Source of the DNA: Selaginella moellendorffii
Lineage: Eukaryota > Plantae > Lycopodiophyta
NCBI RefSeq assembly: GCF_000143415.4
Contig: NW_003314295.1
Coordinates: 1,172,997 to 1,220,420, forward strand
Length of the DNA stretch: 47,424 nt
Reading direction: 5' to 3'
The position numbers were made by a program, and so were the translations under genes. The notes under the pieces were generated by a model. That model was given only the letters and a program-made list of their open reading frames with translations. It ran no database searches and had not been told where the DNA came from. Below are positions 1 through 47,424 of this stretch, in pieces (the first letter of the stretch is position 1; every line of letters starts with the position of its first letter).

Positions 1-246
1 AATTAGCACTTCCATTTCTGCATTCAATCTACCAATCCTTCCATTATGTAAATTAGCTATTTCATGTGAGGCAATTAGTCATCCACCTGTATTGCAGTCC
101 TACGGTGGATATCTTCGTCCGTGGATACTCCACACAAAAGGAAGGATGTACACATGGATGCTCAATATGTACAATTTCAAATTCAAGGGTGGGAATATAC
201 CTTGCTCAAGGGTATATTATATTTTTAAGTAGCCATTAATCAATGA

Positions 247-442
247 GAATCGAACCCATGCCATTTGCTCCGATACCATATGTAATCCACTTTATCTCTT
301 TCCTTTTAAGTCAATTGGAAAAGGAGCAATTGCTTGATGAGAAAGCCTTTAGTAGCTATTTTATTTTCATTTATCCCCCAAGGTTCTAAGGATCTATAGT
401 GATAGTATATCCAAATCTCATCCTATAATCACATGCGTTACA
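247..442 (-). mobile_element. LTR + tRNA-Met PBS junction of a small (TRIM-like) LTR retroelement; internal part runs toward the window start
   Basis: 281-442 begins TGTAA and ends TTACA (terminal inverted repeat). On the minus strand it is followed after 2 nt by TGGTATCGGAGC (267-278, one mismatch to the tRNAi-Met PBS TGGTATCAGAGC), then a B-box-like GGTTCGATTC (247-256). Confidence 0.6.
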
Positions 443-449
443 AATAAGG

Positions 450-2340: not shown

Positions 2341-2660
2341 TGTAAGAAACTAAAAAGAACAACTCAAGAGACGATCCATAAGGGCTTAAATATAAAGGGA
2401 AAGGGCCTATGAATAATAATGCACCTTCTTTTCTAATTAGTTAAGGGTCTTGGGATATTTGGGGTTAAACATCCTTGGGTTTGAATAGTACTGAATTGGG
2501 TGACCTCCCGGGAAGTCCAAACTTAGGAGCTTACATTTGGTATCAGAGCGGGTCTCGAGTCCGACTCTGTTGGTTGGTTAGGGGAATCACACCATATGTT
2601 GATTGATATCTGATAGGTCCAATTTGCTCCTACTGGGCTTGACCCAAGGGGTAGGGTGTC
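2341..2660 (+). mobile_element. Cassandra-like TRIM: 5' LTR (2341-2535) with 5S-derived domain, PBS (2538-2549), ~95-bp internal region, PPT (2646-2656); 3' LTR missing or interrupted
   Basis: TGTAAG...CTTACA LTR termini, perfect TGGTATCAGAGC PBS 2 nt after the LTR, AAGGGGTAGGG PPT followed by TGT, and a 5S-like segment inside the LTR. Confidence 0.8.
2463..2518 (+). promoter_or_regulatory. 5S rRNA-derived Pol III internal promoter (A box / intermediate element / C box) inside the LTR; not a 5S rRNA gene
   Basis: GGTTAAACATCCTTGGGTTTGAATAGTACTGAATTGGGTGACCTCCCGGGAAGTCC aligns ungapped at about 44/56 (by hand) to the plant 5S rRNA segment AGTTAAGCGTGCTTGGGCGAGAGTAGTACTAGGATGGGTGACCTCCCGGGAAGTCC as recalled. 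The 5S 5' and 3' ends are absent. Confidence 0.85.
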
Positions 2661-5600
2661 AATTTAATAATAATCACTTTATAATCACTTTAATAATCTT
2701 TATAATCACTTTTTAATCTAATCAAACCATAATAAACTCACTAACACATATAGCCAATATCTCTAATTATAATTAAAGAGGCTAGTTACATATGATCAAC
2801 ACTTAGCTGTAACTAAAGTGCAAACCATGAAATGGATTCATACAAGTACACAACTTCTTAATAGACAAGGCTATAGTGGGTACTAATACTTTAACTATAA
2901 ACAACTAAATTGGATATCATTATCCTTAGCTAAAATGCAAAGCTACTAAGACTAAATTAAGAGTAATGAGAGCTCACTACTTTTATAAAGTGTAACGAAA
3001 TGCAAGGTGCAACCTACCACCAAATATAATACTACAAAGGAAAAGTATAAAGGTCACCATTCTAGAAAAGTGCAACAACCACTTTTCATATGAATTCTAG
3101 ACTCTATCCAACTCAATTGTTTTAGCCTTAAAAATTAACATCTCTTTTAGGCCACGCCATACAAATTACTTACTAAAGTATAAGCCAATTGAAGTAAATT
3201 CAAACCCCTTCACTAATTTGTATTGGCTTACGAAAATGGAATAAGTGATTAAAAGATCAACCATTAGAAAAGCCTAAAAATAATTTGTGGAAAAATTTCC
3301 AACCTAGAGAAAGAATGACTTTCAATTTAGGAATGCAAATTCTCCAAACTTAGCCAACTTCCTCTTATTTACAACTTTACATAAATTCACTTCAACATAA
3401 ATTTTTATGACCCAATAATATGCTTAAGCATCAAACATCATGCCTATATTTTCAACATCCAATATTAAGATCCACAAATGCTTATGAATACTTAAAAACT
3501 TGATTACCAAGATCACATCTTCAGATATCTATATTGCATTAACACTTTTCTTTAATCATCTTCAAGATAAAATGTGAAGCCAAAACACTAACAAAGAAAA
3601 TGACATGAAAAATCAAACTCTAAGGACAACTTCTTATCACTCAATATAATAATGCCACTTTCACTAACACAAGTGCTAATAATGTCAATGCTTCAACTAT
3701 ACACTTTTTCCATCTAACAATTTACTCGAAGTGTTAATGGATAAACTAACAAATCATAACAAGTGAATGCTATAACCTTTTGCAAAACTCAATGGGCAAC
3801 TCTAAAAGAACCAAAGTACCAGCATAATGGATCACTTTCGAGAACTTAGCTAAAGCTACTATAATGCTACTTCTTGCAAGTAAACTAGCATTACTATCAA
3901 CCACTTTGGATTGATTATCATTTCATCAATCAATTTTGTAAACACATTACTCACATTCACATGGATATAATATAATAATCACAATGACTTAATCATTAAT
4001 CAAGAAATACCACAAATACTGCCCATGTCACTACTATAAAGGTTTATTTAAGTATTAAGTGCTAACTTGATTCGACAAAATGTAATATAAATGCCATACT
4101 CCACTAATAAAAATTTATAATATCTAACACCACTAACTTACTCAAGGAACAATAGCAAAGTTCTATGGAAAAGAGTTGAGCATTACAACCCAAACTTTTC
4201 AATAACAATCCTATGGTTTAATGCTTCATCACTATTCATCCCATAACTCACCACTTGTAAGGCCATTATACCTAATATACACCAAAATAGAAACTCTTGA
4301 TTGCATGGTGTGAATTTGAGCAATGAGATCATACTTTGTTGTGAATCATCTCAGGAAAAAAGAATTATGTGTTTGATTTTTCATCCCTGATAACTTTCCT
4401 TTTGTCTTAACTTGACTAAACCTCAAATTTACATTTGCATTGCCTTCAGTCCAATTTAAGAAAAGTTTATGAGAGAGCTCAGTAATAACTACTTGAATTA
4501 ACAAATTAATCCCTATAGTTTTGATTGATCCATTTATAATCATACTTAAGAAGGATCTACTAATACTGTGTTAATAGCTACAGATTACCCTATTTGCCAC
4601 TCTTTGCAAACCCAAGGGAGGTTTAGTTTTACCCACAGTAACATAAAACCACTTATGGTAACCACCAATAGGTTAACATTAATCTTGCCAACTCAAACTA
4701 TATCCTTAAGTTGCTAATGTACCTCACTTGTGAGCCTAAGTGCAAATTCGTGCAAATAGTACATTTCTATCCATTCTATGAGCCCAAGTGCAAGCTCACA
4801 CAATATAATATAAAAAAGTAACCAAAATCCATACCCAAGGAACAAATATAAAGTCATAGCACCCAAACATGTACCCACTTGAATTATCATTTTCATCTCC
4901 ATGTATTCAACAAGACTATAGCTGCCCAATATCATTGGATAGTACTCGCTAAGATTCATCCTCTTATACCAAATATAGCATATGTGGTTTTCACTCTTTA
5001 TCCTATAGTGATTTATTATAAAATAACCATAAAGCGAAACCTAAACCCTCCATATGCATATGTTATATGTCATGTGTCAATGGAGTGGAACTTGAATTTC
5101 AAAGCTTTGGACTATTGAATGAAGGAATGGAGCTAAATAGAGCTTAGGAGTGAAGGAAGTGGGACTCATGAGCATAAGCCTAAAGAATGAAGGGATAGGG
5201 GCACAAAGCAACTTAGAACAATCCTAAAGCATTGAGCATCACCAATATGCAAAACGAAGATAAATGGAGTCTAATGCTATTTTAACATACTATTGGCTTA
5301 ACATGAGGATATGGGTACACCATCATCTAGCATGGTATAGAGCTTGGATTTGGACCCAAATTAGACATAAAACAAAGATAGACATGTAAACAAGAGTTAA
5401 ACTATACCTCAAGTTAGTTAGTTATGCTTGACCTACCCACTATCCCCATTATATATTTGAACCCCCCCTTAAGGAACACAAGCTTTGGACTTTCACTCTA
5501 GTCTTAAAAGTTAGTTTCTAGAACAATCACAAAAATTTACTAAATATAAAATGACACTAATGTAAGATATAAATTTTTCCTTTCCAATTTACTAACTTAC

Positions 5601-8600
5601 CTTATCTCTTTGACTACTATGGCCTTGGCTTTAGTTAAATTCCTTCGCCAAGGTTCCCATCTATTATACTAGCTCATACTTGGTCTTATTTGGTTTCAAC
5701 AAATCATTGCACAAGCAATGAAGCATTAGATATCCATCTATGGGTTCCCAAATTCTTTCCTAATCCCCTTCCCCGGGTTAGACTAGATTTAAAGTTCAGC
5801 TACATTCCTCACATACACAAGTAGCCAAACACACCAAGTTTTTAGGTTCTTAATATGTCTTGGTACAACAAAACTTGATTATAAGACCCTTTAATCCCAA
5901 GCCTAAATCCCAAGCCTTGGGTGTAAAACTTGCTTTGGGACACCGGAGGGAAACACCATGGCTTAACAGCCTGATGTAGGTACTTCTATTCCCCCACTTT
6001 TATCCCGAAAGGAAGGCCCAAGCCCCTAGAAAGGGTAAGGACTAATAACTTGCAAGATACTCAAGTAAGGCACCACTCCATATAAGCTAGAAGCACCATA
6101 GTTGGTTTCCCTTCTAAGAGTGAGAGTTGCTTTTAAGCACTTTTTTAAGTGGCCCCTTTGGCACCACCTGAGTCCATGCTCACTCCCACCCAAAGCCCTT
6201 AAACCCTAACCTTAACCTCAAGTTAGTTTGGAAGCACTATTGAAGAGTTCCTTCAAAACTGATTCCTAAACTTCACTATCCCTACTATACTTTTGGAACC
6301 TTCTATAGCCCCTCCCCCGGGAGACATATGCTTTGGGCTTTCACTCTACAACATATATTAGTATTCGAACTCGGTGTCAGACTTGACGTCGAACTTGATC
6401 TCAGACTTGACCTCGGACTCGGTCTCGGACTCGGTCTCGGACTCGATCTCAGACTCGATCTCGGTCTCGATCTTGGACCTAACCTCGGACTCGATCTCGG
6501 ACTTGGTCTTGGATCTGATCTTAGATCTTGGACTTAGTTTTGAACTCGATCTTAGACTCTGTCTCGAACTCGGTTTCAGAGTTGGACTTCATCAGATAAG
6601 ACTGAATTTGAGATCGAGTCCAAGACCGACTTTGAGACCAAATTCAAGACCTAGTTTGAGATCGAGTTCGAATTCTTTTTCATTTTGGTCGTGCTTTTGG
6701 GGATCCTTTAACCTATGACACCTTGGGGAGTTGGTTCCTCACAACTGGATTGCAAATTTGGACATGAGAACAACACTATTATATTTAGGACAATCTCTAC
6801 ATTTTATAAATATATCCAACTAGCAAATCTAAACCCTTTCATAAATAGTCAATAGGACCTAATAGAACCAACACATAGGGTATGATAATGAGGGTGTTTA
6901 GCAAAGATGGTAAGTTATCATTTGGCAATATTAAGGGACTAGAGCTCAATACATAGGGGTTTTTGTCATTAGTCAATGCAAGACACAATGAGATTGGAAC
7001 TCTTTACCAAGTTAAATATGTTTAGCTAATACTATGCATGAATTCTATCCTTATGGTTGTTTGGTCTAAGTACACTTTAAATGCCCAGTTAACTTTACTA
7101 GCATAAGAGGGATTGATAAAGGGAACTGGCAAAACTAACCTTATGTCATCGTGGCAGTAAGAAAAGAATATCCAAAAAGACTTGTCGACAAGTAACTTTC
7201 AATACTTGCAATCACATTTATAAGGCTTGAGCTAAAATAATATCAATTTCCAAATCCCTAGAAGTTGTCATTGCATGTAAAAAGAAAGTTTAAACCCCTG
7301 CCCTTTTGAACAATTTGATGCATTTCGTAAAAAAATTTAAATGCCTTATACATAGCAAATGCAACATATTTCTACAGGTCCATTGTTGGTTTACATTCCA
7401 TATATTTATAGTTATTGAAATCGACTTGATAGTTTTCTGAAAGTAGCTAGTTGAATTTAGAAAAGACCAACCAATTATAATTAAGAAAACAAAAGAGAAC
7501 AAAGAAAGAAAGAACTTAATTGTATATACTAGCCAACTACATTATCATCATCATGGAAACTAAAAGCCATGTACTTAAGGTCATACAACTCTTTTTTACC
7601 TTGCATATGGAAGAAGTTCATTGAGAACAATACTAGAAGTCTAAACAATTTATTTGGAGTGGTTGGGAGGAACTCTAGTAATGCTAACATAGGTTTCAAT
7701 TCAGACATTGAAAGGTAGACATGTTTAGAATCAACAGTTGTACCCTTTGTAATTTTCTTGGTAGACTTTTGGATAACATTGTTTGCAATGTTTTTGGATC
7801 AATAAGAAAAATATTAGATATAGCAAGAATATAAAACTTACTAAATTACCTTGCTTCAACTAAACATAGATCATTTATAATATCAAGTTTTCCCCCATTA
7901 CACCTTTTCATGCCACTTAAGTGTTTTTAGTGATTTTGAGAGCATGATTAAAACAAAATAACATATCTTATAGTGACCATGAAGGATGAGACTTGCTAAC
8001 ATTTTGGAGTACATCTCAAGTTGATTTGCCAAAGTGCCTCCCTTGGGGTGGAGTTTGTATTGGTTCAAATTTCCACTCAAGCAGCTATTGGTAAAATAAT
8101 GCCATTTGATAAAACAACTTTTGTAAAAATCAAAAAAACAATTTAGTTATAAAGAGAACAATAAAAAAATAAAATAAAACAAAGAACAACAAATTTTAGG
8201 AGGAAGTTTTTCAATCAGTCATATGTCTTTCATGCAATTCAGTTCTTTTTTCATCATATCAAATATAAAATTTCAAAATAGCCCATTCATTTTTTTGTTG
8301 GATCATTGTTGCTATTATAGGTTCAAATGAGCTTTTATCCAATTGATTGTAATCTACTGGCCTAAATACCTATTGTCTACTTTACAACAAAATTAAGTAA
8401 GAACCAAAAGATCTAATCAATATAACTTACCCATCCATGATCATAATTACCACCACCACAATTTTGAGCTTTCTATGCCTTCCTTCAAATTGTTGAAAAA
8501 ATTAGTAATATAAAACTAAAAAAGGAAGCACTCAAAAAAACCTAGATAATTGAGAATTTTTAGCTAAATCAAGACTATTATGAGACAACCCAAGATCAAA

Positions 8601-10900
8601 AGAAAGAACATCCATCTAAGATTTACAAAATTGAAAGTGGAGAAATTAAATAAAGAAAAAGAAACCAAAAGAACATACTTGTGTCGGTGTGAAATAAAAC
8701 ACTAGTAGACTCAGTGTTAAAATACAATCTAGAGCTATTGTGCAAGCTATTGCAGCCATTAGAGACAATAGGAGAAAATCCTAAGCAAAAGAAAAAATTT
8801 CCAAGCCATTATGTCACTATTGAGAATTAAACTGTAATTTGAGCCACTATGCCATAGCTGTACAAGAAATATAAGTTGCACTATAAGTGGTTGTACTAGA
8901 CTAGAGGTGCCATGATTTAAGTTGTGAGTTGTTATGCCAGATCCAAGCTCAGTATTCGATTAAGAAAAATATAAATAATTTAAGCTTGTAGAGTTTTATA
9001 TTAAAAGAAAATTTAGTACATGTGGCAATGTTTAATTTGACCTACTTCAACCTCCAATTACACACTACCATGTATCACCTCAATAGGTTTGCTATATACC
9101 TATTACGTGAGTTCATGGGCACAAACTCACCTAACCCACTAAAACCCATTTCCCAGACTAATGTTTAGCTCACTTGTTCTAAGCAGGAATAGGCTTGCCT
9201 TACCCATAAACCAATCTTCTTTTTAAAATTTTAGTTTTTTGTGATTATTTCCTTTTTAAAAAGTTTTGATAACATATATAAATCTACATAAAAAATAATG
9301 ACACACTCTAAGTGAATAAAAGTTGCTAAGAATTCTCAAGGTGATCGAAAATATAATAATATAAAAAATAAAAAAAACATGAGGATAAAATTGGTGATAT
9401 CATTTGTATATAACATTTATTATTTATTATTGGATGTGTAGTTTAATGAGTTCTAAAAAGGATAATATAGTTATAACTAAAACTTTATATTCTTATTTAT
9501 CATAATATTTTATATAATAAATTATCACACTTAATAAAAGGTATGAAAAATTTATATTTCCATGTGATAAAAACTAATTTATTTTTATTATTCATATTGT
9601 ACAATAAGACATTTTATATTAAAAATTTTTATTTAAATATATTTGCTTAAATGAGTAAAATTTCTCAATTAAGTAGTATTAATATTTTTCTATAGTATAC
9701 TATACTTTCACTATTTACAAAAATGTAATTTAGTTATTTTTATAAGTGAAAAATCCTAAAGAATTAAAAAGTGTAAATAAAATAACTAGATTTTTACTGT
9801 AGTTCTTTAAACTATTACTATAAGTGTTTAAATATACCTATATAATAACTATATTTAATATGAAGATAAAGAAAGTTAATTGTGAATTCATATTACACAA
9901 TTATAATATAAATATAGTAATGTGAAATATTGTTTTTTTATTATTATTGTTATTAATTGTATTTAATCCAAATTTTAAACATGATATATGTTAAAGTATT
10001 GCTGAATAAATTTAATATTTTTTTAATCATTTACTCAAACCATTTTTATATAAATATAGAGAATATAATAAGTTATAAAATTTTAGCTATGGTTTTTAAA
10101 ATAGAATTTAAAGTTTAAAATGACTTTTAATAGTTGTAATTTATAACCAGTTTTAGTTAAAAATATTTTATTTTAAAACTATTAAAATATTTTATTGATT
10201 TGTCAATTTTTATAGTAATTCTCTATTATATTTTACTAGCATATAGACTACTACTAAACACAGTTGGCAAGAAAAATTTAGTAAAATATTTTTTTTAGAT
10301 TCATAAAAATCCTAAGTTTATGCTTTAAATTACAAGTGACAATTCCAACTATTGTAGTGATTATATTATAACTTTTAATGATTGAGTTTGGCACAGTTGA
10401 AGTAATAGTGCTTGATTAGGGGTTTAATGTTGTCAAATTTTCCATTTATAATTTTGACAAAAGAGTTAGATGTTGGAAATGTACTTATTATTGATGTAAA
10501 TTAGACTTGAATTTATTTTTATAAAGGATGAAAGCTAAACAAATCTTCTAAATGAAAATATAAAAATTGTTAAAGAAAATAGTAGAAAAAGTTGCTGAAA
10601 CTCCTAAAGAAGATGAATGGTTTGTTTACTTTTATTATTTTAGTTTTACTAAAATATATATATATACCTGATTGTGGTTATCGACCGATTGTGAAAGTGC
10701 CAAACAACAGATTAATTCACAATTCGAAACAATCGGGACCATTCATGGTTAATAGTGAATATAAGCCCAATTTAAAAGTTAAAATATTCAAAAGTTACAT
10801 ACCAAAAGTCTTTTGAAGATGAAGGAAAAAATCCCCACCTTTCTAAAAGACCTAAATTAATTCCTAGAACTTTTAAAAAATGTTTAAAGAGATTCGAACC
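2661..10900. other. AT-rich, CpG-depleted degenerate repeat/transposon DNA with no credible intact gene
   Basis: Only short low-complexity ORFs. Extreme AT content at 9200-10600. Abrupt compositional switch at ~11,050. Confidence 0.6.
6363..6672. repeat. Degenerate 6/12-bp tandem array (CTCGGACTCGAT-like) whose last ~70 bp is in inverted orientation
   Basis: Repeated ctcgga/ctcggt/ctcaga/ctcgat units at 6363-6590. The end AGTTTGAGATCGAGTTCGAA (~6653-6672) is nearly the reverse complement of the start TTCGAACTCGGTGTCAGACT. Confidence 0.8.
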
Positions 10901-11583
10901 TTTAAAAGGAAAGCCATAGCAGATTTCAAGTCTACAAACTATCCAACACTTCTTTCATCACACACTTAACACAATGCTTGTTTGACTGATACTGACATAT
11001 AAAATCATATATGTACTACAAAGATTTGAATTAGAATATCCAGAGCATTTTGTTTGTGGTGGTATCTAGAATCTTGCTGATCCAGTTTCACCCAATGGAA
11101 ACTTGACGCGTGGCATCACTTGGTTCCTACCCCCGTTAAATCTAACCCTGCCTCCACTAAAATAAAAAGAAAAAAGCTCTAGGGCTTGCGTGATTAGGTC
11201 TGGAGCGGCCTCGCGAGTTTTGCTCGACTTCGATGCGATTCCACCCCCCTGTGAGGATTCTGTGAGCTCCGGCGCCTCCCGATGAGCAGGATGTGCTCGA
11301 TCTTGATGAGCATTGCCCGGATTGACAATTCGCTGATAGCATTCTTCGTGTGGATCGATACTTAGCGCACAGGGATGGGGGACGAAGACGCCGCCGAGAT
11401 TGGCTGATTGATGCCAAGGCCGCCCTGCGCCAGGCCAAAATCTAGGTATTCTTCCTTCTTTCTTTCTTCTTCTTCTTCCTCTTCCTCCTCCTCCTCTTCT
11501 TGCGCATCGCCATCGGCAAGAAATCCAGAGATTTCCACCAGCAGCAGCAATCCGGCAGAGATTCTTCTCCGGGAAGAAGAAAT

Positions 11584-33841: not shown

Positions 33842-34389
33842 TTCTCTTTGGAGCAACGGAAGATTCTGTACAAGAACTTTGTTTCATCTTTGCAAAGTTT
33901 GGGTTTTTTTCTTCTGGAGATCAAAATCTATTCTAAATGCTAGACGTGAGCACATAAGCAGTAGCATTCTTGTGGTCGACCTCAAAATGTGGCAACATAA
34001 TCAAAGCACCGGAATTTTGTCTCTTGGACGGTTCTAATGTTGGTGAACGACAGAATGATGGTCTTGCAGCTTCTCTCGAATGCAGTGCTTCGAAGGAGAG
34101 TCACAGATTCCAAGCTCTCGGGCTTCCGTAGCAGTGATCCAGGCTGCAGCGGACAAAGCAGCCTTGGCAGCGGAAAAAACGCTTGCGAGAGAGCATGCTC
34201 CAAGGAGTTCGTCCAAACGCCCGATGCAGATGCAGAGCCAGTTTGGTAGTTTGCGAACCAGATTGACAAGCGGATGGTGGAGAGCCTTGAAGTGACTTGG
34301 ATGTCCACAACAGCTGACAGCAATGCTGCTGAATAAATAAAATTGCTGCACGTTGTATTGTATGGTTTGCTTTTTTTATAAAAAAAACA

Positions 34390-36946
34390 TTATTATGATA
34401 ATTAATTTGTTATGATCTATTCCTGCTTTTGTATTAGTTTCTTATTACGTGTATTTTTTTTTAATTATCTGTATGTATCCTTCTTTCTCCATTATTGTTT
34501 GAAATGGTTTTGCTTCTTCTTTTTGATAGTTAATATTAAAACCTCCTGTAATTATTATTGGATTTTTATTATCTATTTTAAATATATTTTTGTAGTTGTT
34601 TTGTGAATATTTGTATATTTGTTACAGGTTTTCTATGTAAATTTATTATCTGTAATTGTTTTTTTATTTTTTTCTAGTGATGTATATGACATTGCCATTG
34701 TTTCTGTTTTTAAATGTTCTACTTTTTTCTATTTATAGCTATTTGTATGCAATATTGCTATATGTGGGGGCCATTCATGTATATATGATTTATATTTATT
34801 AAAATATAAATCCTCATGTTTTTGTGTTTTTACTTCTTGCATATATATTATATCTGATGTTATTAATTGTGAATCACTCTTTATATCTTCTTGATGTGTG
34901 GTAATAGATGTTGTGTTTGAAACTTGTATAAAAGTTTGGTTAGCTGTTTTTTTCTTCTTGTAAATATATTAAATCAATTTGCCATGGTGCTTCTATTGTC
35001 ATTTGTATTATTTCTTTACCTGCATCTTTATTGATTTTAATATGTTTATATTCAATTGGTCTATATAAATGTATACCTTTTAGTGTTTGTGCTCTTGATA
35101 ATGTTGTATATGCTTGTCCTGGAGGCTTTACTTATAACATAAAACAATTTAGTACTATTTATTATTCTTGTTTTTTATTGGTGTCTAGTTTTTTTCATTA
35201 TTTTAGTATTATATTTTCTTTAGCTCTTGTTTTTCACCTGTTTCTATATTTTGGAATTCTATCCATATTATTTGTTTTTCTTCAATCTGGGTTACATATT
35301 GTAATACTCCATTTGCTCCATTTACTAATGCATCTTCTGTTGCTATATTTTGTGTTATTTCAATTGCCATTTTCCTTTTAAAATGTAATATTTTATGTAG
35401 TCCTTGTGTTTTTCTTGTGTCATCTAATAACCTGAAATGTGTAGCACAAGAATTTCCATGGTTGTCTTGTGCTTCTATAATTATATCTATACTTTGTATG
35501 TGTTGTGTTATGTTCACTTACTTGTTCATTAGTTTCAAATGTATGGAAACATCATTTTCAGGTCTATATATTTTTGTTGCATAAATTGATGTTTCAAATG
35601 TAAGATTTAATTGATAAAAATAACCTATAAAAATACAATCCATCCCACCAAAATCTATTCCATATGTTGTTTTGAAACTTTCACATCTTCTATTTATATA
35701 TTGTAGCATTTCTATACTTACCATTAATATTTCATCTATTACTAAGAATTTTATTGTTGAAAATTTTCTCCTATATTTATCTAATGTGTCACTTGTTAAT
35801 ACTGTTTGACGTTGTTATTATATTTTCTTTAGCTTTTGTTTTTCACCTGTTTTTATATTTGGGACATGCAAAAGCTGAATGTATTGTTGAACCATTTATA
35901 TTACAAGTTAGTTTTCTTGTAGGTGTTGTTATTAATATTTTTTGTCCTTGGTTTATTATTTATATCTTGGTTTGTTTTATAATATTGTTTGAGTGTTTCT
36001 ATAATTGTATTCAAAAGCATTGATTTTACAGTTCCTGCTCCTCCTGTTAAAAATAAGCATAACTGTTTTTTAAGTTTTTAAATTTTTTTTAATATGAAGT
36101 CATCATATATTAGTCTTTGCTTTTTATTTAGAGTTCTTAATAATTGACGGTATTTACTAATCTCCATTAGGTAATCATCTTGTATTGTAATTGTTGTATT
36201 TGTTAATAATATATCTTTAAAATTAAAACTATTTTATTGTTATATTTCATTTTGAATAAATCTTTCCCAATATCAAATTCATCTGTTTGATTTGTATTTA
36301 TTTCTTGTATATATTATGCTTGTTCTTTTAATATTTTATTTTCTTCTTGTTCTGGGTTCTCCCAATGAATTTTATTCTCATTTGTTACTTTTTTATATAT
36401 GTATTTGTATTGTTTTTCATCTATTTGTTCTATCATATGCATTTATGTTATGTTTTTCTTTGCTAAAGTTTATAAATTTTATTATAGTTTTTGTTTTACG
36501 TTGTTACTTCCTTTTCAATTATATATTCAGCTGTTATCTTTATTAATGTTAAGTCTTCTAATTCTTCTAATGTTTGCATATATTTTTAATTAGTTCTAGT
36601 ACTGCTATATTTGCACCATATTCTTGCATTCTTGCAAGATCTTGCTTCATTTTTTTAACATTTTGTTCATTGTTCTTGTGGTTGGTATCAATGAACTTTA
36701 TAGTTTTAAACATGTGATGAAATGGGATTGACAATATTTAAAAAAATGTTTATTGAATTGGCATTTCTTTACCAAGTATGAAGTTATTTCTTAATAACCA
36801 AACTTTGTTAAATACATCTATTCCTTATTCTTGACACTTTTTTTATACAGTTGAAATAGCAAATGTCTTTGTTATTTCTATTTCAATACATGCAATATAT
36901 GATAAAGAATATGCTGACGCTACATATGGATTAGGAATTATTTGTA
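34390..36946 (-). mobile_element. Degenerate Helentron-type rolling-circle element: Rep C-terminus, PIF1 helicase, APE-type endonuclease (pseudogenised)
   Basis: Minus-strand remnants in order: (I)QIIPNPYVASAYSLSYIA (~36945-36890), LFLTGGAGTVKS Walker A (~36055-36021), VIDEILMVS, FGGMDCIFIGYFYQL, QAYTTLSRAQTLKG (~35120), then SNTTSITTHQEDI...DIIYMQE, INLHRKP, IIITGGFN and GIDH endonuclease-like motifs (~34930-34410). Confidence 0.75.
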
Positions 36947-37619
36947 CTAGTAAGGATCCCAGCTCCACTGGGAGTAATAGAGAATAATTTCAATTTGTAA
37001 AAATGTAATTGTAATTGTAACTGTTCAATCTATTTATTTAATGTACTTTAAGTACAATAAAATATAATAATGTTTAAAAATATAGATTTAAAACTCACTG
37101 AAACTATATACATAATATAAATTTTAAAAATATAAATTGTTTTATGGAGTTTAGCATATCATTAACATTAATTCTGTATATGTTTTTATATAGAGAAAAT
37201 GCTTATTCATTCATTTAACTCTTATCCATTCAACTCTTATATTTTAAGTTATGAAATATATCAATTTCTATAGTCACTACTTTATTTACTTTTTAACTTT
37301 ATAATATATTTTTTATTGTATCTACTATATATGATCTTTGTACAACAAAATTGTGTTTTATTTTACTATCAAATCAATCAAATACTCTTTGTTCTATAAA
37401 GGTTTAATTCTATAGATCAAAGAGTATGCTGAAATATCTGCTGGGAGATATAGCAGGCCAAAGACAAATAAATCTTCTCTTGTAATTTTACAATGTTAGA
37501 AATTTTATTGTATACAAGGTTCCTCACCTAAGCAAACTAAGAAAGGTTTTATCACCAAAATTGTGATAATATCGTCATCCAGTTTATGAGGTTTATAATG
37601 TGTTCATATGAAGCTCATT

Positions 37620-38412
37620 TTCCACATCTTTTAGCATTTTAAATGCCTTTGCATATGGATTAATTTCTCGTAATAAAGCATCTAATTCATTCATCAATTC
37701 TGTGTCACACTTACTGTTATATTTATTTTTCATTCTTGTTTCTGTAGCTTCTAGTGTGTCTAAATATAAAGCTGAGAATATTTTGCATCATGACCTTGCT
37801 TAGGACGAAAACTACCAATTGAATGGTATACTTGTCCATGAATTTTGAAATAATATGGTCCATTGCCAATCATTTCATCAATATTTGCCCCCATAGATGC
37901 AAATGCCAAAGTCGAATTAATTCTTTAAATTTTCCTCGTTAGTCTGTTCCATCTAATAATTTATGAATCAGTTCAGGGAACTCAATTTGTTTTCCTATAG
38001 GCACACATCCACCATGACAGCATTGTGATTGTGTTTCTGTAGCAAAAAGAAAAGCTTTACAATAGTCACAATGTTTATCCATGACTCCAATATAATTTGC
38101 TTTACATTTACCGTCTATGTTGTTTTGCAAGAGTCCTAAATATTTAGTATTTTCCATGCTTTCTGTTCCATTTCTAGGATTTACTTCATTAACAGGTAGG
38201 GTAATAAATTCAACAGTGTTTATAAAAGTGTTTTCTATGGATATCAATCTTGGAATTGTTGGGGGTTCTTCAAAGGATACTAGGTTTCTCACACTTCCAT
38301 CCATGCTTTTATTCATATATAGAGATGAATTCAAGCTTGCTGAACTTCTTTTTATTATACAGCCTTCATGTAAAATTAGATCACATGTTTTCCTCTTTCT
38401 TTTGCCACCCAT
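37620..38412 (-). pseudogene. Helitron RepHel N-terminal fragment
   Basis: MDKHCDYCKAFLF.....QCCHGG zinc-binding motif followed (after a stop/frameshift) by NSTLAFASMGA...GPYYFKIHGQVYHSIGSFRP and LLREINPYAKAFK, typical of canonical Helitron N-termini. Confidence 0.8.
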
Positions 38413-38961
38413 TGATCTATAGGAGATTTTACAATCTCTTTTAGAAATAGAAACTTAGACAGCGTGTGCAGGCTCTAGATGGTGAAAATAAGTAAATAGA
38501 CAAATAGCCAGACCACAAGAAAATAGAAACACACTGAATGTTGCCCTTAGGACTTTCTAATTATCTCTCAGAGAACACAGAAACAAAATTACCTCTTGAC
38601 AAATGCATAAGGCAACCTAATTGTGTAGTCCTTTTTTCTATGATTCGAAACAGCTTTTCTTAACCTATTTAGTTACACTCTCAAAAAGTTTACCACAGCT
38701 TTTTAAGGTAATATTGTGACATTGTAATAATCTTATCTAATATTGTGATAAGTGATTAGAGGAAATAACATCCCCTTCAACCACGACATCAGAAATGTGA
38801 CAATTTGTTTGATTCTAACATACAGTTGCCATCATAGTCCCATAAACTAAGAGGCAATGTGATCCCAGAGCCAGCCAACGTAGATCCTAGGCTCTGCCCT
38901 TGATGCTTATGGCAATCTGCTGCAATTGGAAGGAAAAGAGAAAAAAACTCAGTTAAAACTG

Positions 38962-39345
38962 GATCTTACAAGTACAAAACAAAACAAAGAAAAATGCTAC
39001 CTGTACACTGGTTTGGAGAGCTTGATCAACGTATTTTAGTGGTTGTTTCTCCATTTGAAGAGTTCCCCTGCAGGATAAAAGTTTATTGCTAAGCAAACAT
39101 GAGTCGCAATCTGCAAGGAAAAGGTCAATTTAGAAAGCAAGATCAATCCCCTAGATCTTACAAGTACAAAACAAAAAAAAGAGAAAAATGCTACCTGTAC
39201 ACTGGTTTGGAGAGCTTGATCAACGAATTTTAGTGGTTGTTTCTCCATTTGAAGAGTTCCCTTGCAGGATAAAAGTCTATTGCTAAGCAAACATGAGTAA
39301 CAATCTGTAAGGAAAAAGTCAATTTAGAAAGCGAGATCAATCCCC
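38962..39345. repeat. Tandem duplication, ~192-bp unit
   Basis: gatcttacaagtacaaaac...gatcaatcccc begins at 38962 and again at 39154. Confidence 0.9.
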
Positions 39346-39497
39346 GAATCTCTCTTTCAGCACATGCACAATTAACCTATTCAAAAGATCAGTGCAAGTT
39401 TTAAGTCAGAAATATCACATTGTTTCTGCTGATTATGAAGCTCTTATCTGTGCTCTTCATGGCAAAATACTGGCAGGAACCTTTCAACTCTACTAAA

Positions 39498-41310
39498 TGT
39501 ACACTTGCATCACAAAAAGGCTTTTTAATCCCATATATAAGAAACGACTATGAAAAAACTCACCTTCTTGTGTTACCAAAACCAAGAGATTTGACTGGCC
39601 GAAAATGGTGGAGTCAGTTTCTCGCTACTAGTTTGAATCTGCATTTAAAACAAGCAAGAAAACTGGAGAAGTCATCAGACTAAACATGAGCTCATGAATC
39701 TTTCTAATAGCATCCCAAGAGTTTAGATAAACGATTTTAGAGTGTTTAGCCCAAAGTCGTTGGTTGTCTGGACACGAACAAAAGAAAAAAAATCTTGAAC
39801 TCCCAAACAGCCCTCTGTTACTCGCTCCTGCACAACAAGAATCAAGTTAGCCACAGAGATCAAGAGAAATGAGAGATCATCTTAAAACCTAGATCCATAT
39901 GTATGCTGGGAATCTTGTTGCAAGCCCTTGGCATGACAGGATAAGAGATCCAGGAGCACCAGGCAGTCTCTTCATTGCTTGATCATATATGAGCTGCCCA
40001 AGCACGTACTCCTTGTTGTACATAAAAAGAGGCAGTAAAATATGCACATGTAAAGAAGCACTGAGAATATGCATACATTTGAACCAGGTCTGCAGCTGCA
40101 TCATGTCTTGACAACACTGTCACCTCCAAACCTCACTGCATATCTCTGGCCTAAAGAAATCGTCAACAAGAACAACACAAGAAAGAGAAAACGTAACATA
40201 AAATTCACAGTCTCTTGATCTTCCAAAGTCATATCAAACAATGACATGACCACTGAGTGGGTATAAATATTTTTCCTTTGACAAGACTGTATGACACACA
40301 CAACATGGCGAACAGGAGGGATTGTACACTTGCATCACAAAAAGGCTTTTTAATCCCATATATAAGAAACGACTATGAAAAAACTTGCCTTCCTGTGTCA
40401 CCAAAATCAAGAGATTTGATAGGCTGAAAATGGTGGAGTCAGTTTCTCGCCACTAATTTGAATCTGCATTTAAAACAAACAAGAAAACTGGAGAAGTCAT
40501 TAGACTAAACATAGGCTTATGAACCTTTCTAATAGCATCCTGAGAGTTTAGATAAACGACTTTAGAGTGTTTAGCCCAAAGGTCATTAGTTATCTGGACA
40601 CGAATAAAAGAAAAAAAATCTTGAACTCCCAAACAGCCCTCTGTTACTCGCTCTTGTGCAACAAAAACCAAGTTAGCCTCAGAGATCAAGAGAAATGAGA
40701 GATCAGCAATATGCACACTGGGAATCTTGTTGCAAGCCCTTGGTGTGACAAGGTGAGAAATCCGGGAGCATCAGCCAGTGGGGAAGTTGTCACGGAGCTG
40801 GAGATCGTGTTCTTCAAACTGTCCACCATTGACCTGTGTGTGTGTTGCGAATGGTGATGAACAATCAACGATCCAGCCTTTTGCTTTTGCCACCAAAATC
40901 AAGAGATTTGACAGGCTGAAAATGGTGGAGTCAGTTTCTCGCCACTAATTTGAATCTGCATTTAAAACAAGCAAGAAAACTCGAGAAGTCATCAGACTAA
41001 ACATGCGCTCATGAATCTTTCTAATAGCATCCCAAGAGTTTAGATAAACAACTTTAGAGTGTTTAGCCCAAAGGTCATTGGTTGTCTGGACATGAGCAAA
41101 AGAAAAAAAATCTTGAACTCCCAACAGCCCTCTGTTACTCGCTCCTACGCAACAAAAACCAAGTTAGCATCAGAGATCAAGAGAAATGAGAGATTAGCCA
41201 TACGCACGCTAGGAATCTTGTCGCAAGCCCTTGGCGTGACAGGGTGAGAAATCCGGGAGCATCAGCCAGTGGGGAAGTCGTCATGGAGTTGGAGATCGTG
41301 TTCTTCAAAC
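39498..41310. repeat. Three diverged copies of a ~420-500-bp unit with minus-strand splice-like signals
   Basis: Copies at ~39498-39960, ~40323-40822 and ~40889-41310 share aaaatggtggagtcagtttctcgc...ttgaatctgcatttaaaaca...cagccctctgttactcgctc...gaatcttgt.gcaagcccttgg. Confidence 0.88.
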
Positions 41311-41634
41311 TGTTGAAGAGGTGTGAAAACTCCTCTTCGCTGGAAATTTATTGTTAGTAAGAAAACAAAAGAGAAAAGGGCCTAATCTCCAAGGGCTGAG
41401 AAGAAACACGAGTAAAAGAATGTTGTGTATTAATAAGAAAAATGATGGAATGGAAATAGGGATCCACAATTCGAATTCCCCCCTTTGAAAGGCTAGCGGT
41501 TCTAACTGCTAGTATATACTATATGCTGTGCATGATTTAATCTATGGCTCCGATGCAGCCCTGGGTTCAAAGTCAGAGTCCCCTGAGCCTGGGTTTTTGG
41601 TTGATACACTCTGCTCCCCTGACAGAACTAGACA
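41311..41634 (-). repeat. Putative 3' LTR (inner boundary uncertain)
   Basis: Outer end TG at 41311, defined by loss of similarity to repeat copy 2. Candidate inner end CA at 41633-41634 next to a short purine tract GAGGATGG on the minus strand (41635-41642). Confidence 0.5.
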
Positions 41635-41711
41635 CCATCCTCGGTTCGAACATAGTCAGTTTCCATCGCTTGTTGTTACTGTTGCTCAAGTCGATAGAAG
41701 CGACGTTTTTG

Positions 41712-43506
41712 CTACGGGAGTGTAAGCTCGTGGTTAGGGACACTGTCTGGTGGATCTGTTCCATCTTCCTGGAGGTCGGCTACCTCAGCCAGTAGGGCGG
41801 TATGATCATCCTTGAGCTTCCCGTAGCGGGTGTTGAGCTCTTCGTATTTGAATTTGTAGGTGAATTCGTGAGCTGCTGATGGGGTTGATGGCTGCTTGGA
41901 GACGATCTTCCTGATGTCCCGGAGGTCAGTGCGGATCTGCTTCATCTCTTCGAGCTGATTATCCAGCCGGTGGTTTAAAGGCTTATAGAATTCCTTCTTG
42001 ATCACTCCCCGGGTGTCTATGAAGGAGTCTTGCTTGAGAAGATACTATGCGATGTCGGCTGGTGTTGGGAAGTAGTTTGCTTGCTCGCGGTGCATGTGTT
42101 GATCGAGGGCTTCAAACAACTTGCGGGTGCAGTAGCTTGGGTTGCGAAGTTTATCTTCGTACTCCTTCCTGATCTCATCATAATCACGGCATACTTGACT
42201 CTGTGGCTGAGGCATGGCTGCTGCTCCTGCTCCTACTCCGTGATCTTGGTGTTTCTCGCTAGGGTTCACTGTGTTCTTGGTCCCGGGAGTTGAAGTTGCT
42301 GGAGGCTGAATCTGCTTCATTGGATGTGGGTGACGTGGTCGGGCCAGATTCTTTGAGGTGGTTGGAGATGAGCTTTTCAGTTGGATGGTGGATGAATGGC
42401 CCAGATGTGGCGCTGAAATTAATTTAAATTTTTCGCTTGGAATTTTGTTGAAGAGGCAGAATTTTTGTGAATGCTGGTCGTGGTATTTGCTGGAGGAGGC
42501 ATGGTTGCGTGTTCTTCAAGTGATTGGCGAAGGTAGTTAATATTTTCTTTTGTGGAATGTGTCGAGGAGGTCGGGGCGTTGAGAATGTTGTTCTCAGCTG
42601 GTGGAGAAATTGAGTTCTGGGCGAGCAGCTGACGTTTTCCTTTGGCGATGTTGATGTGTTTGTGAGANNNNNNNNNNNNNNNNNNNNNNNNNNNNNNNNN
42701 NNNNNNNNNNNNNNNNNNNNNNNNNNNNNNNNNNNNNNNNNNNNNNNNNNNNNNNNNNNNNNNNNNNGAGTTGAGCCTGATTGTTGAGATGCTAGCTTCG
42801 GTTTCTTGCTGGGAGTTGCTCCTTCTGATTCTGACTGTTCTTCGGAGCTGTCACTTTGTTCTGTGGAGTTTGTTTGGGTTGTCCACGGTTGTTTGTTGGG
42901 AAGAGCTTGGTGTAGAGCGATCAGCAGTGGGAATATTACTGTCCGCATGGTCTTCTTGTTGAGTGTGGCGAGGATGGCACGGTCGAGAAGCTTGAGAAGG
43001 AGCTCGTGGAGATGATGAGCCACGTTCACATGTTTGCCGTCGAGTAGAGCTCTGTAGACTTCTGCTGTGCGCTTGCTGATGGTGTGATCTGTTGGGCGAA
43101 GTTCGTAGTAGAGGAGGAGGGCTTTGAGGTGATCCATATGGTGCTCCTCGATGTCCTCCCATGTGAGCTCACCAGTAATTTCTCAATTGGCCTTGGTGAT
43201 TTGCTGTGGAACTTCTCCTGAAAATTTGAGCAGTCCCTTGTTGGAGATTTTGAAAACAGAGGTGATTCTTGCTGGGCTGAGGGTAATCTCATTGGTGCCG
43301 TCGGTTATGGTGCTGTTCTTGGGGTTGAAGGAGGCAGCCAGCTTCCTCACTAGTTTTTGATCAGGGTGTGTTGAAAAGGCCTTGTGGAGGAGCTCGAATC
43401 CATGGTCCTTGAGCCAGGTGGTTGTGTCGTTGCTGGGAAGCCTAGGAATATGGTGTATGACGTATCTGAGGCGCCGGGGTGGATGAGCTGGCATCTTTCT
43501 CTTCAT
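41712..43506 (-). pseudogene. Extra sense ORF downstream of integrase (plant-retrotransposon accessory ORF with C-terminal coiled coil), broken by stops and a gap
   Basis: Consecutive ORF pieces 43183-43506, 42424-43137, 42045-42320 and 41712-42005: LVRKLAASFN..TITDG..EITLSPARITSVFKISNKG, ALLDGKHVNVAHHL, PSKKPK, heptad-rich tail. Confidence 0.6.
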
Positions 43507-45781
43507 TTTCTGTGGTCGAAGTGCTCGCCCCGTTAGGGTTCTTGAAACCTGTAACTGTTGGTTGGCTGATCGTGTGGCGCTCGATTGCTGGTGATGAATG
43601 GTAGAGATTTGTTGACAGAATTGATGTGGTTTGATTTGGCTTGATTGCAGATCAATGGTGGATATTGCTGATGAAGTTAACTCAAGTTCAACTATTGATA
43701 TTTGCTCAGGTGGCGTTGATCCAACAGTAGCTTGGGACTTAAAGATTTTTGCTGCTGTTTGTTGCTGAAGTTGGTGTTGAGTTGAGTTGAGTTGTGTCGA
43801 ACTGATTTGAGTTAAAGTTTGTCTGCCGGGGTGATTGTCGATTGTTGGTTTTGGGGTGTTTGTTGGTTTGGGTCGGAAATTTGCTGAGGTGCTGATGCTG
43901 AATATGTCGACGTGATATGGTTGAAGCTTGTTGAGGTTGATGATCTCAGCGAAGTCTTCAGCAAGTGTGCTGACTTTGGCAGTGCTGTTGGGGTATAGTT
44001 CAATGATTTTGAAAGGTCCTTGCCAGTTGGTGTGGAGTTTTCGGCCAAGTTTGCCGATGGGTCCTCAGTACCAGAGAACATGATCGTCGATGCTGTATTT
44101 GGGAATGTTATGCCGGGGATGCTTGTCAGTCATGCCGAGCTTTTCTCTGTTTTTGGATGGCGTGAAGTNNNNNNNNNNNNNNNNNNNNNNNNNNNNNNNN
44201 NNNNNNNNNNNNNNNNNNNNNNNNNNNNNNNNNNNNNNNNNNNNNNNNNNNNNNNNNNNNNNNNNNNNAGAGGGCGTTGAGTCGGAGTTTGTCGAGATGT
44301 TCGAGTTGCTGAAGCCTTTCTCGAACTGCATGTTGCTGTTGCTTAAACTCAGAATAGGTTTGAGTCAGGTAAGTCGTCGGTAAGTCTTTGGGGTTTGTTG
44401 CCGGTGGTGATCGGGCTGAGATAACCTGCTTGCTCGTGATTTTTGCTGGGTTTGTGGACGATCTTGAAGTTGTATTCTTTTAGTAAAAGGAACCATCTTG
44501 ATATTGGCGCAGATAGTATCGGCTTGTTGATGAGGTAAAGGAGTGCCTTGTGGTCGACGAAAAGGATGACTTTGGTTGATAGTATGTAGTGTCAGAACTT
44601 TTGAAGTGAGTAGATCATGCCAAGAGCTTCTTTCTCGGTGGTGGTGTAATTTCGTTCAGCTGGGATGAGTAGTCGGCTGGCGTAGTAGATCGGTTGATCT
44701 CGGTTGTCGTGTTGAGTTTGGCTGAGAATTGCACCAGTGGCAATGTTGGAAGTGTCGACATGAATGTGGAACTCTTGTGTCCAATTGGGCTTGGAAAGGA
44801 TCGGTGCTATTGTTAGTTTGAGTCGGAGATTGTCAAATGCTTGTTGCTGTTCAAACGTCCATGTCCATTGGGCATCTTGCTTCAGTCCATCGGTGAGTGG
44901 TTTGGCAATGTGAGCGTACTTGTGGATGAATCGTCGGTGATATCCAACTTTGCTGAGGAAGCGCCGAAGTTCTTTCTGGTTCTTCGGCGGTTCGAGTTTG
45001 GAGATGACGTCGACTTTGTCCTTGTCGATGAGAATGCCGTCTTTGCAGACAACATGGCCAAGAAGTACTCCAGATTTGATGAAGAAAGCACATTTGTCGG
45101 GGTTGAGTGCTATGTTGTTCTCCTCGCACTTGTTGAGGCATTTCTCCAGGCATTCAAGATGTTGATCTTCCGAGCTGAAAACACTGAAGTCATCCATGAA
45201 GACTCTCATGAAGTTGGTGAGGTAGTCTTGGAAAGTGTTGGTGACGAGCCTTTGGAAGGTGAATGGGGCGTTGTAGAGTCCAAAAGGCATTCGCCAGTAA
45301 GCATAGGCTCCCCATGGATTGATGAATGCTGTCTTGTGCNNNNNNNNNNNNNNNNNNNNNNNNNNNNNNNNNNNNNNNNNNNNNNNNNNNNNNNNNNNNN
45401 NNNNNNNNNNNNNNNNNNNNNNNNNNNNNNNNNNNNNNNNNNNNNNNNNNNNNNNNNNNNNNNNNNNNNNNNNNNNNNNNNNNNNNNNNNNNNNNNNNNN
45501 NNNNNNNNNNNNNNNNNNNNNNNNNNNNNNNNNNNNNNNNNNNNNNNNNNNNNNNNNNNNNNNNNNNNNNNNNNNNNNNNNNNNNNNNNNNNNNNNNNNN
45601 NNNNNNNNNNNNNNNNNNNNNNNNNNNNNNNNNNNNNNNNNNNNNNNNNNNNNNNNNNNNNNNNNNNNNNNNNNNNNNNNNNNNNNNNNNNNNNNNNNNN
45701 NNNNNNNNNNNNNNNNNNNNNNNNNNNNNNNNNNNNNNNNNNNNNNNNNNNNNNNNNNNNNNNNNNNNNNNNNNNNNNNNN
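42668..45781. other. Three assembly gaps (42668-42767, 44169-44268, 45340-45781)
   Basis: Runs of N. Confidence 0.98.
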
Positions 45782-46764
45782 TCTCAAAAACTTGCCGAGA
45801 TGTCGGTGGCGAGTACAATGTAGTTTTCGTTGCTGTTGTCGGCAAGGCTGACTTTTTCAAGTTTTTGGTCAGCTGGAATTGACGGAATGTAGGCAAATTT
45901 GTTGTGGTTGTTGACTGTGAATGCCAGTGGCACTTCGAGTTTTGTATCTCGAGTGACTGGATTTTTCAGTGCTGATGTAATCGGGGGTCGTTCTCGTTGG
46001 AAGTCGGCAACAATTTGGAAGAGGTCGATCTCGGCCAAAGGTTCAAGATTGGGGTAGGCTTTGAGAATTTGTTGTTCTTCATAGTCGTCGAGGCCATCTT
46101 CGAGATTATATTCTTCCAAGTCAATAGGTCGATTGTGGCTGGACAGCGATTTGGTCGCTTTTGTCGACACAGTTGTCGGTCCGTCTGGTCCGCGAAGGAT
46201 AAGATTGTCATTGGGCCAATCTTGATAAACTTGGGCAGTTCGGAGCCAAGGTTGACCGAGGAGAATTGAGTATACGTCGGTCTGCTCCGGTAGTTTGAGA
46301 ACAACATAGTTGACTGGTATTTCGACGCCTTGAATGGTGGTGTTGACTTTTTGGATGATGCCTTTGGGTTGAACAGATCGGTGGTCGGCCATTCGGACAT
46401 TGAAAGGTGCTGGGTGAACTGGGCCGATGTTGAGTTGTTGAACAAGACTTTCTTCAATAATATTAATGCTGGAGCTGCCGTCAATTATGGCTCCTCGAAC
46501 AAGATGTTTGTTGAGTTGTAGGTCGATTGTCGGAACATCATTGTCACAATCGCCTGGTTGAATCTTGGTTTGAAATGTGTCAACAACTGTCTGTGTCGAG
46601 TTGAGTGTGGGCGAGTCTGTCAAAGTGTTGGTTGGTGCAGATGTCAGATCGGTGAGCTGTTTGGTAAGGTAGGGTGCAATCTTCAGCAATTGGCCGATGG
46701 TGATCTGAATATTTTGGTTGAGGATAGTCTCTGCTATTGCTTGGATTTTGTCAAAGTTTGCCAA
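43910..46764 (-). pseudogene. Gypsy pol (protease, RT, RNase H, integrase end) with assembly gaps and an in-frame stop
   Basis: AIIDGSSSINII and ILLGQPWL (protease); KTAF..PWGAY....MPFGL.NAP.TFQR and FMDDF (RT); HVDTS and NYTTTEKEALGMIY, F*HY, VDHKAL (RNase H); WQGPFKI (GPF motif, ~44020). Confidence 0.9.
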
Positions 46765-46928
46765 ATTGTGTTCTGGTGTTGGTGTCGATGTTGGACGAGT
46801 TGTCTGTCAGTTTTCTGGTATTGAGTCTTGGCATTGTTGTCGAGCTGGTGATGGTTGAGCTTCATTGTTGGAGTCTAAAATCACTAATTCGGGTGGTTGT
46901 AGAGCGAGTTGCCGTTGTATCTTGGTGG

Positions 46929-47424
46929 CTAACTTCTGCTTCTTTTCCCATTCCCGGGGTTTTGTCGGGCTCTCAGGGCCTTTCTCTTTACTATCTCCAG
47001 AATCTCTGTCTGATTGTTGTTGTTTTTCTGCTTGAATTTGTGCTCAGGTTTGTACTGCCATGACTTGAGGATCTGAGTCATCATTGTCAGCATAAGGTAG
47101 TTTGTCAGTCTCAACCATCCTTGTTGTTGGTGGTTGCTGCTGGTTCTAATCTTGTTGTCGAGGAGGCAGTGGACCAAGTCTCGGCAGGCCGCCTTGGTTT
47201 TGAAGTCGAGGTTGCCATAGTCGGTTGTTATAGTTGCCTTGGTAGCCGTGGTCTTGATAACCTTGGCCTTGGTATCTTCGGTTTTGGTATCTTGGGTATT
47301 GTTGGTATCCTTGGTTGTAGTTGTCTCGGTTTGCTGGGTAGTTCCGGTTTGGCAGGTGTTGTCGATGGTTGTAGTTGTTGTTGTAGTCATTGTGAAATTG
47401 TGTAGTTGTAGCGAGGTTGATCAT
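46929..47424 (-). pseudogene. C-terminal low-complexity gag-like region (N/Y/Q/R-rich)
   Basis: YNQGYQQYPRYQNRRYQGQGY...PLPPRQ directly upstream of the protease. Confidence 0.5.

Follow-up and report, generated by a model that had tools for sequence, protein, structure and literature searches.

The probable remains of an endonuclease-bearing Helentron in the lycophyte Selaginella moellendorffii

Helentrons, reportedly treated in Poulter 2003 and in Thomas & Pritham 2015, are Helitron-like elements of the HLE2 type, in which a Rep nuclease and a Pif1-like helicase can be followed in the same protein by an endonuclease (EN) of the EEP-fold family; among the canonical Helitrons (HLE1) we know of no element that has an EN. 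According to the established model of Helitron-like elements, the HUH/Tyr Rep makes a nick and becomes covalently linked to one DNA strand, and the Pif1-like helicase unwinds in the 5′ to 3′ direction before strand transfer into the target (PMC8788227; PMC11417382). By analogy, the HUH/Tyr Rep of a living Helentron would nick at the end of the element and bond covalently to one strand, the 5′-3′ helicase would peel the attached strand off, and this strand would be re-joined into the target. The fused EN may assist by nicking target DNA, a role that is not established even in intact elements (PMC8788227). The HELIANO study (NAR 2024) reported HLE2 elements from 13 land-plant species in six of the eight classes sampled, included land plants in its list of hosts for subgroup b, which bears the EN, and overturned the earlier view of land plants as lacking HLE2 (PMC11417382), so that the rarity in vascular plants claimed by an earlier note on the DNA studied here is unsupported or outdated. 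No pairing of Selaginella with Helentron or Helitron2 was found in the literature searched. Here we analyse a stretch of 47,424 nt from the lycophyte Selaginella moellendorffii (the window; GL377599.1:1172997-1220420) whose minus strand carries what is probably a relic of such an element.

From position 36946 down to about 34363 the minus strand appears to hold an old, dead, EN-bearing Helentron (HLE2), of whose transposase gene the 3′ two-thirds remain, a reading to which we assign a probability of roughly 0.85. The upper limit of the relic (also GL377599.1 about 1207359-1209942) is a breakpoint in the homology between two haplotypes, and the lower limit is a change both in composition and in haplotype identity. 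The relic has a GC content of about 24% with an A-rich coding strand, and lies in an AT-rich island at 34300-38500 where GC is 0.16-0.34, compared with 0.44-0.55 in the flanks. No long reading frame spans this island, and three-frame translation of the minus strand shows that the pieces of the relic are broken by at least six frameshifts and several in-frame stops. The motifs quoted in the earlier note were all recovered from this translation, on the minus strand and in the order that it gave (Walker A, Ia, VIDE, YTTLSRAQT, QVSNTTSITTHQEDIKSDSQLITSDIIYMQE, INLHRKP, IIITGGFN and AGIDH). Of the six features that define the EN-bearing Helentrons, the Rep motifs and the fused EN are present, and the helicase probably has the affinity that is a third. 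The relic is inactive because of its frameshifts and stops, the loss of the aspartate of GDFN and the lack of termini; the copy is dead, and the activities given above are those that the living family would have had. Exact look-ups of the open reading frames (ORFs) of the window in protein records gave no match, and self-comparison revealed no second copy of the element within the window.

The EN was sought with a hidden Markov model (HMM) built on nine EN domains of Helentron proteins and run against all 2,099 stop-free pieces that six-frame translation of the window gives. Three of the source proteins (P0058, P0094 and P0002) match Pfam Exo_endo_phos or Exo_endo_phos_2 at the coordinates used, P0094 doing so below the Pfam cut-off. 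For a fourth (P0050) it is a relative in its 90% cluster, P0165, that has an Exo_endo_phos-type match, and the remaining domains of the nine were chosen by BLASTP similarity to P0058 and P0094. The top three matches among all the pieces were exactly the three EN pieces, colinear and on a single strand, and the fourth-best match in the window had E=6.6. Read as one sequence with X at the breaks, the EN scored 38 bits, against a maximum of 3.9 in 200 shuffles. The match includes the stretch 'hiddiradvn..sdiiilaE' of this Helentron-specific profile; DIIYMQE is the catalytic Glu motif and AGIDH the terminal D-H, and ITGGFN derives from GDFN, with the catalytic Asp lost in the window copy. The EEP-family match anticipated by the earlier note was thus obtained with the lineage-specific profile (the top three pieces and 38 bits) and not with the generic Pfam model, to which nothing here matched. 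Decayed Helentron endonucleases that are missed by the generic EEP model of Pfam can therefore be found by a profile of their own lineage.

A second locus provides a further view of the same element. The F-box ORF beside the relic is 100% identical to SELMODRAFT_417415, and a 96%-identical paralogue or allele of this F-box protein led to locus L001 (GL377591.1); a further locus, L002 (GL377599.1), is 100% identical to window 42097-20700 and is the window itself. Gene order is the same in L001 (FtsJ, F-box, two Methyltransf_29, Glyco_transf_92), with flanks that are 97.6-98.5% identical, and we treat L001 as what is probably the other haplotype of a two-haplotype assembly. The L001 locus as fetched ends inside the Rep domain. 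An open EN piece of 155 aa in L001 matches the EN HMM with E=7.9e-7, and GEFN and LIDHIW are also kept there, so that the two haplotypes combined show a complete EN as far as the terminal D-H. As a prediction from sequence comparison, the EN domain is confirmed.

The ENs of Helentrons are themselves related to those of long interspersed nuclear elements (LINEs) (PMC8788227), and the relic EN belongs with the latter to the EEP fold family and has its motifs in the same order (N, E, GDxN, D, SDH). Given also the failure of Pfam to assign the stretch, it might be a LINE fragment lying by chance beside a Helitron-type helicase. However, the EN is on the strand of the helicase, has its composition and starts about 58 codons past motif VI, and this spacing is equal to that in the intact protein P0165. 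The helicase and EN lie in one gene, as in Helentrons, and their junction is common to both haplotypes. There is no reverse transcriptase after the EN; instead host sequence that is >99% shared by both haplotypes starts at most about 60 bp past it. LINE copies are usually 5′-truncated, losing the EN and keeping the reverse transcriptase. With the match to the Helentron-specific EN profile added to these points, a LINE origin is very improbable. The earlier description of a fossil EN-bearing Rep-helicase (RepHel) protein in a land plant is supported, the spacing from motif VI being that of intact Helentron proteins.

The helicase pieces are colinear with the HLE2 HMM (E=1e-21, 1e-9, 4.6e-6 and 2.3e-4), and two match Pfam PIF1 weakly (E=8.6e-5 and 2.5e-3), in agreement with the PIF1 assignment made earlier. 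A phmmer search with a 98-aa helicase piece against 1.84e9 cluster representatives gave 148 matches of 29-47% identity, the best at 62 bits, with long relatives scoring 36-62 bits. In a first Pfam scan all five long matches contained Helitron_like_N and PIF1, and four of the five DUF6570; a C-terminal Exo_endo_phos-type domain was present in P0058 and P0094, and an OTU domain in P0085. Further long matches with a C-terminal Exo_endo_phos are P0165 and P0002. Where the long matches cover the Rep region Pfam identifies Helitron_like_N in 7/7 and DUF6570 in 6/7, PIF1 being found in all that reach the helicase, and an EN follows the helicase in about 10 of the helicase matches. The nearest long relatives of the helicase therefore appear, from their domain content, to have the Helentron/HLE2 layout (DUF6570, Rep, PIF1, and EN or OTU). 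Against the PDB, PIF1s score about 21 bits, and Helraiser (HLE1) is not listed at E<=1.

We note that a 49-nt direct repeat is present within the helicase, at window 35207-35255 and 35816-35864 (94% identical, 609 nt apart), so that ..ETGEKQELKKI is encoded twice. Of the two copies, the downstream one fits the 2B region of the helicase, and the upstream one lies between motifs Ia and II and resembles a templated patch.

No plant occurs among the named nearest hits of the helicase, which come from a nematode, a thrips, wasps, bivalves, a spider, a moth and Fusarium, and the AT content of the island greatly exceeds that of its flanks. Both the GC content of 24% and the animal best hits would be accounted for if the element had arrived recently, by horizontal transfer from an animal whose genome is AT-rich. 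Yet identity to the named animal and fungal hits is only 31-45% over the 98-aa piece, which is no evidence for transfer, and the absence of plant hits carries little weight because protein databases contain few ORFs of plant transposons. The copy is full of stops and frameshifts and occurs in both haplotypes, and three later events have struck it since. Haplotype substitutions within the relic show no net GC-to-AT bias, and in view of this lack of drift the composition looks old or at equilibrium. We consider a recent arrival improbable. It also seems unlikely that the relic represents a lycophyte lineage with its closest living relatives among animal and fungal Helentrons rather than among the HLE2 elements of other plants; were this true, the relic would testify to an ancient transfer between kingdoms, with early vascular plants as recipient or donor.

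All that the window retains of the Rep is QIIPNPY..YSLSY, with the catalytic-type tyrosines of YxxxY (YSLSY) at 36909-36911 and 36897-36899. The Rep tail resembling DIQ...PY...Y..SY that was noted earlier is therefore there in its PY..YSLSY part; the literal DIQ reads LVQ in the window because the insertion of a Helitron (described below) splits the Ile codon, and NVDIQ is intact in the other haplotype. An HMM was built from 15 HLE2 Rep domains, and three motifs of L001 match it in colinear order with the correct spacing. These are KCKFNYPIPLMQQTKILEP (KCKFNYP..TKILEP, a CRFNFP-type motif) with E=4.5e-8, NVDIQIIPDPYGAAAYSLSYIA (NVDIQ..YSLSY) with E=1.3e-7 at model positions 334-375 (consensus ranmDiqyildeyavaaYvvsYis), and, at the position of HUH, TPHEHAIIWLEN (TPHEHAIIW), a weak match of E=0.013. 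The allelic piece with the Tyr motif had no Helraiser match in the PDB. Because the L001 motifs match the HLE2 Rep HMM, the Rep tail is assigned to an HLE2-type Rep, of which it is predicted to be the catalytic YxxxY motif. By tblastn, aa 726-866 of P0162 and 73-213 of P0165 align to 37031-36573 (E about 6e-7).

The end of the relic at 36946 is due to the insertion of a canonical Helitron, which is present in the window haplotype only. The minus strand of the window reads TCCCAG-TGGAG-CTGGGA-TCCTTA-CTAG/TACAAATAATTCC across the breakpoint (the slash marks the junction), and that of L001 reads ...AATGTAGATA/TACAAATAATTCC, i.e. an empty A/T site (GTAGATA/TACAAAT). What the window has at the breakpoint is a classic 3′ end of a canonical Helitron (hairpin, six bases and CTAG), placed between A and T, and this is the sole hairpin followed by CTRR-T on the minus strand within 36900-42200. 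Further upstream on the same strand, by 0.65-1.5 kb, is the decayed N-terminal region of a canonical Helitron RepHel, containing a Cys-rich open stretch of 171 codons, INSTLAFASMGANI..GPYYFKIHGQVYH..QLYI and then ..NPYAKAFKML. Its pieces 37763-37924 and 37596-37787, both on the minus strand, match Helraiser (PDB 7lcc_A) at aa 187-239 (E=3.1e-14) and aa 234-290 (E=2.2e-6). A set of 170 HLE2-type proteins contained nothing similar to the remnant, nor did the HLE2 HMM match it; the Atlas neighbours of the remnant are plant Helitron fragments, its GC content is 30-34% compared with 24% for the relic, and a word-index protein search with the 171-aa stretch gave no match. This Helraiser-like remnant probably belongs to the same internally deleted Helitron as the 3′ end. 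The AT-rich sequence between them is most simply part of the inserted Helitron; PDB searches of the pieces at 37397-37603 returned nothing useful. Neither Pfam nor the PDB revealed an HLE1-type Rep or helicase in the inserted element, and searches for TC-start and (TCA)n patterns gave no convincing 5′ end. An apparent 70% match between 36946-37685 and L001 196-844 was considered as homology and rejected as AT-rich noise, transversions being dominant and the outer part no better than shuffles.

The two parts on either side of 36946 are adjacent on the same strand, AT-rich and decayed, the N-terminal pieces matching Helraiser and the helicase and EN matching HLE2. They might accordingly be read as a single chimeric RepHel at 38454-34380, in which an HLE1 N-terminus is fused to an HLE2 Rep tail, helicase and EN, representing a recombinant lineage. 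This is barely credible, and was ruled out as an annotation by two observations. At the junction position the HLE2 Rep of the other haplotype runs on without interruption (HUH, CRFNFP, NVDIQ..YxxxY), and the junction itself is the hairpin and CTAG of a Helitron 3′ end at an A/T site that is empty in that haplotype. Moreover the haplotypes show no homology in the sequence that separates the two parts, the parts differ in GC content as given above, and a fusion at this junction would leave no HUH core. The comparison of haplotypes thus assigns the Helraiser-like frame to a different element from the Helentron relic, and prevents a false annotation as a 'hybrid Helitron/Helentron'.

The same comparison dates three later events in the history of the locus. 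The Helentron inserted before the haplotypes diverged, because both carry the relic; the Helitron, a long terminal repeat (LTR) retrotransposon and a 570-bp deletion then followed, each in one haplotype. In that of the window, the canonical Helitron entered at the A/T within the Ile codon of NVDIQ, cutting off the 5′ half of the Helentron, and this displaced half was not found in the window. In the other, a retrotransposon of about 5 kb entered the EN, and 570 bp of the helicase were deleted. Its LTR element is 4.96 kb in length (L001:2641-7596; window ~34545 is the empty site) and lies just before GEFN, with TG..CA ends, 176-bp LTRs that are 93.75% identical and a target duplication of about AGGAG. 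The deletion has removed window 35756-36325, i.e. the region of Walker A and motif Ia, and has 15 nt of microhomology at its junction. Haplotype divergence is 5-8% within the relic (window 34541-36946) and 1.5-2.4% in the flanking genes.

Several points weigh against the identification of the relic as an EN-bearing Helentron. Pfam Exo_endo_phos is not significant on any EN piece of either haplotype, and single-sequence searches of the PDB, including those with the EN of the allele, found no EEP structure; the EN was called with a home-made profile. On 28 stop-free pieces Pfam gave only weak PIF1 or AAA matches, without an EEP domain, Helitron_like_N or DUF6570. The window copy is missing the DUF6570 region, the HUH core and both termini, its 5′ side having been cut by the Helitron insertion and its 3′ side stopping at most about 60 bp past the EN, and the other features of the group (DUF6570, the inverted repeats with a TT target and the subterminal palindromes) would lie in these lost ends. 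The probable placement in HLE2 is drawn from the best hits, their domain layout and the lack of a Helraiser match rather than from a tree. Lastly, we infer that the Helraiser-like remnants and the CTAG end form one Helitron, whose 5′ end was not found.

The relic shares with the Helentrons (HLE2 subgroup b) an HLE2-type Rep, with HUH, CRFNFP and NxDIQ..YxxxY in the allele and YxxxY in the window, a Pif1-like helicase followed C-terminally, at the usual distance, by an EEP endonuclease, and best database hits having the layout DUF6570, Helitron_like_N, PIF1 and Exo_endo_phos. It differs from them as a dead fragment that lacks DUF6570, the HUH core (in the window haplotype), the termini and the Asp of GDFN; its host is a lycophyte. 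By contrast, it is the neighbouring sequence from 36947 to at least 38454 that shares with canonical Helitrons (HLE1; Helraiser, PDB 7LCC, and those of plants) the N-terminal region, the hairpin with CTAG and insertion at A/T, whereas the helicase, Rep tail and EN of the relic have no Helraiser match. The relic is an ordinary, fragmentary new example of the known Helentron/HLE2 type. It matters little alone, adding a lycophyte example to the recently recognised Helentron/HLE2 elements of land plants. The coordinates of the features are collected in Table 1.

Table 1. Features of the Helentron relic, the inserted Helitron and the corresponding L001 segments, in window coordinates
Feature	Position	Strand	Evidence or remarks
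Probable Helentron (HLE2) relic: Rep tail, helicase and EN	34363..36946	-	colinear with full-length HLE2 HMM, 36737 to 34448
Predicted AP-endonuclease (EEP-fold) fused after helicase	34379..34968	-	DIIYMQE, INLHRKP, ITGGFN, AGIDH; Helentron-EN HMM
EN motif QVSNTTSITTHQEDIKSDSQLITSDIIYMQE	within 34732-34968	-	
EN motif INLHRKP	within 34581-34673	-	
EN motif IIITGGFN	within 34448-34621	-	
EN motif AGIDH	about 34410-34424	-	
EN piece	34732-34968	-	E=7.7e-6; model 23-71
EN piece	34581-34673	-	E=0.56; model 129-157
EN piece	34448-34621	-	E=1.1e-4; model 152-205
Predicted Pif1-like SF1 helicase	34943..36077	-	Pfam PIF1 and HLE2 HMM
Walker A GGAGTVKS	36021-36044	-	
Motif Ia	within 35846-35959	-	
Motif II VIDE	about 35731-35742	-	
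Motif VI YTTLSRAQT	within 34943-35131	-	
Rep-to-helicase linker	36081..36845	-	36570-36737 matches Rep-set HMM positions 407-458, E=0.0013
Predicted C-terminal Rep motif (V)QIIPNPYVASAYSLSYIACIE	36846..36946	-	allelic piece matches HLE2 Rep HMM
VQIIPNPYVASAYSLSY	36897-36947	-	about 1.8 kb upstream of EN start
Canonical (HLE1) Helitron 3′ terminus	36947..36973	-	sits exactly on haplotype homology breakpoint
Hairpin TCCCAG-TGGAG-CTGGGA	36957-36973	-	spacer TCCTTA, then CTAG at 36947-36950
AT-rich non-coding interior (GC 16-30%)	36974..37595	-	no Pfam, PDB or HLE2-HMM match
Decayed N-terminal remnant of canonical Helitron RepHel	37596..38454	-	Helraiser match
L001 840-1455	36946-36326		81% (blastn); 92% (global alignment)
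L001 1441-2640	35755-34541		93-95%
L001 7597 onward	34547 downward		93.7% blastn to 30596; 97.6% host flank

Other repeated sequences lie in the window. A tandem duplication of 194 bp at 38976-39345 (93% identical) lies upstream of the Helitron remnant, and so do three copies of a repeat of about 430-470 bp at 39498-41313 (88-92% identical). AT-rich islands are also found at window 1-11000 (GC 0.21-0.34), with no HLE2 Rep or helicase signal and with EN-profile matches at noise level. Finally, Ty3/gypsy-type retrotransposon coding sequence (reverse transcriptase and protease-like ORFs) occupies 42400-47424, interrupted by assembly gaps at 42668-42767, 44169-44268 and 45340-45781.

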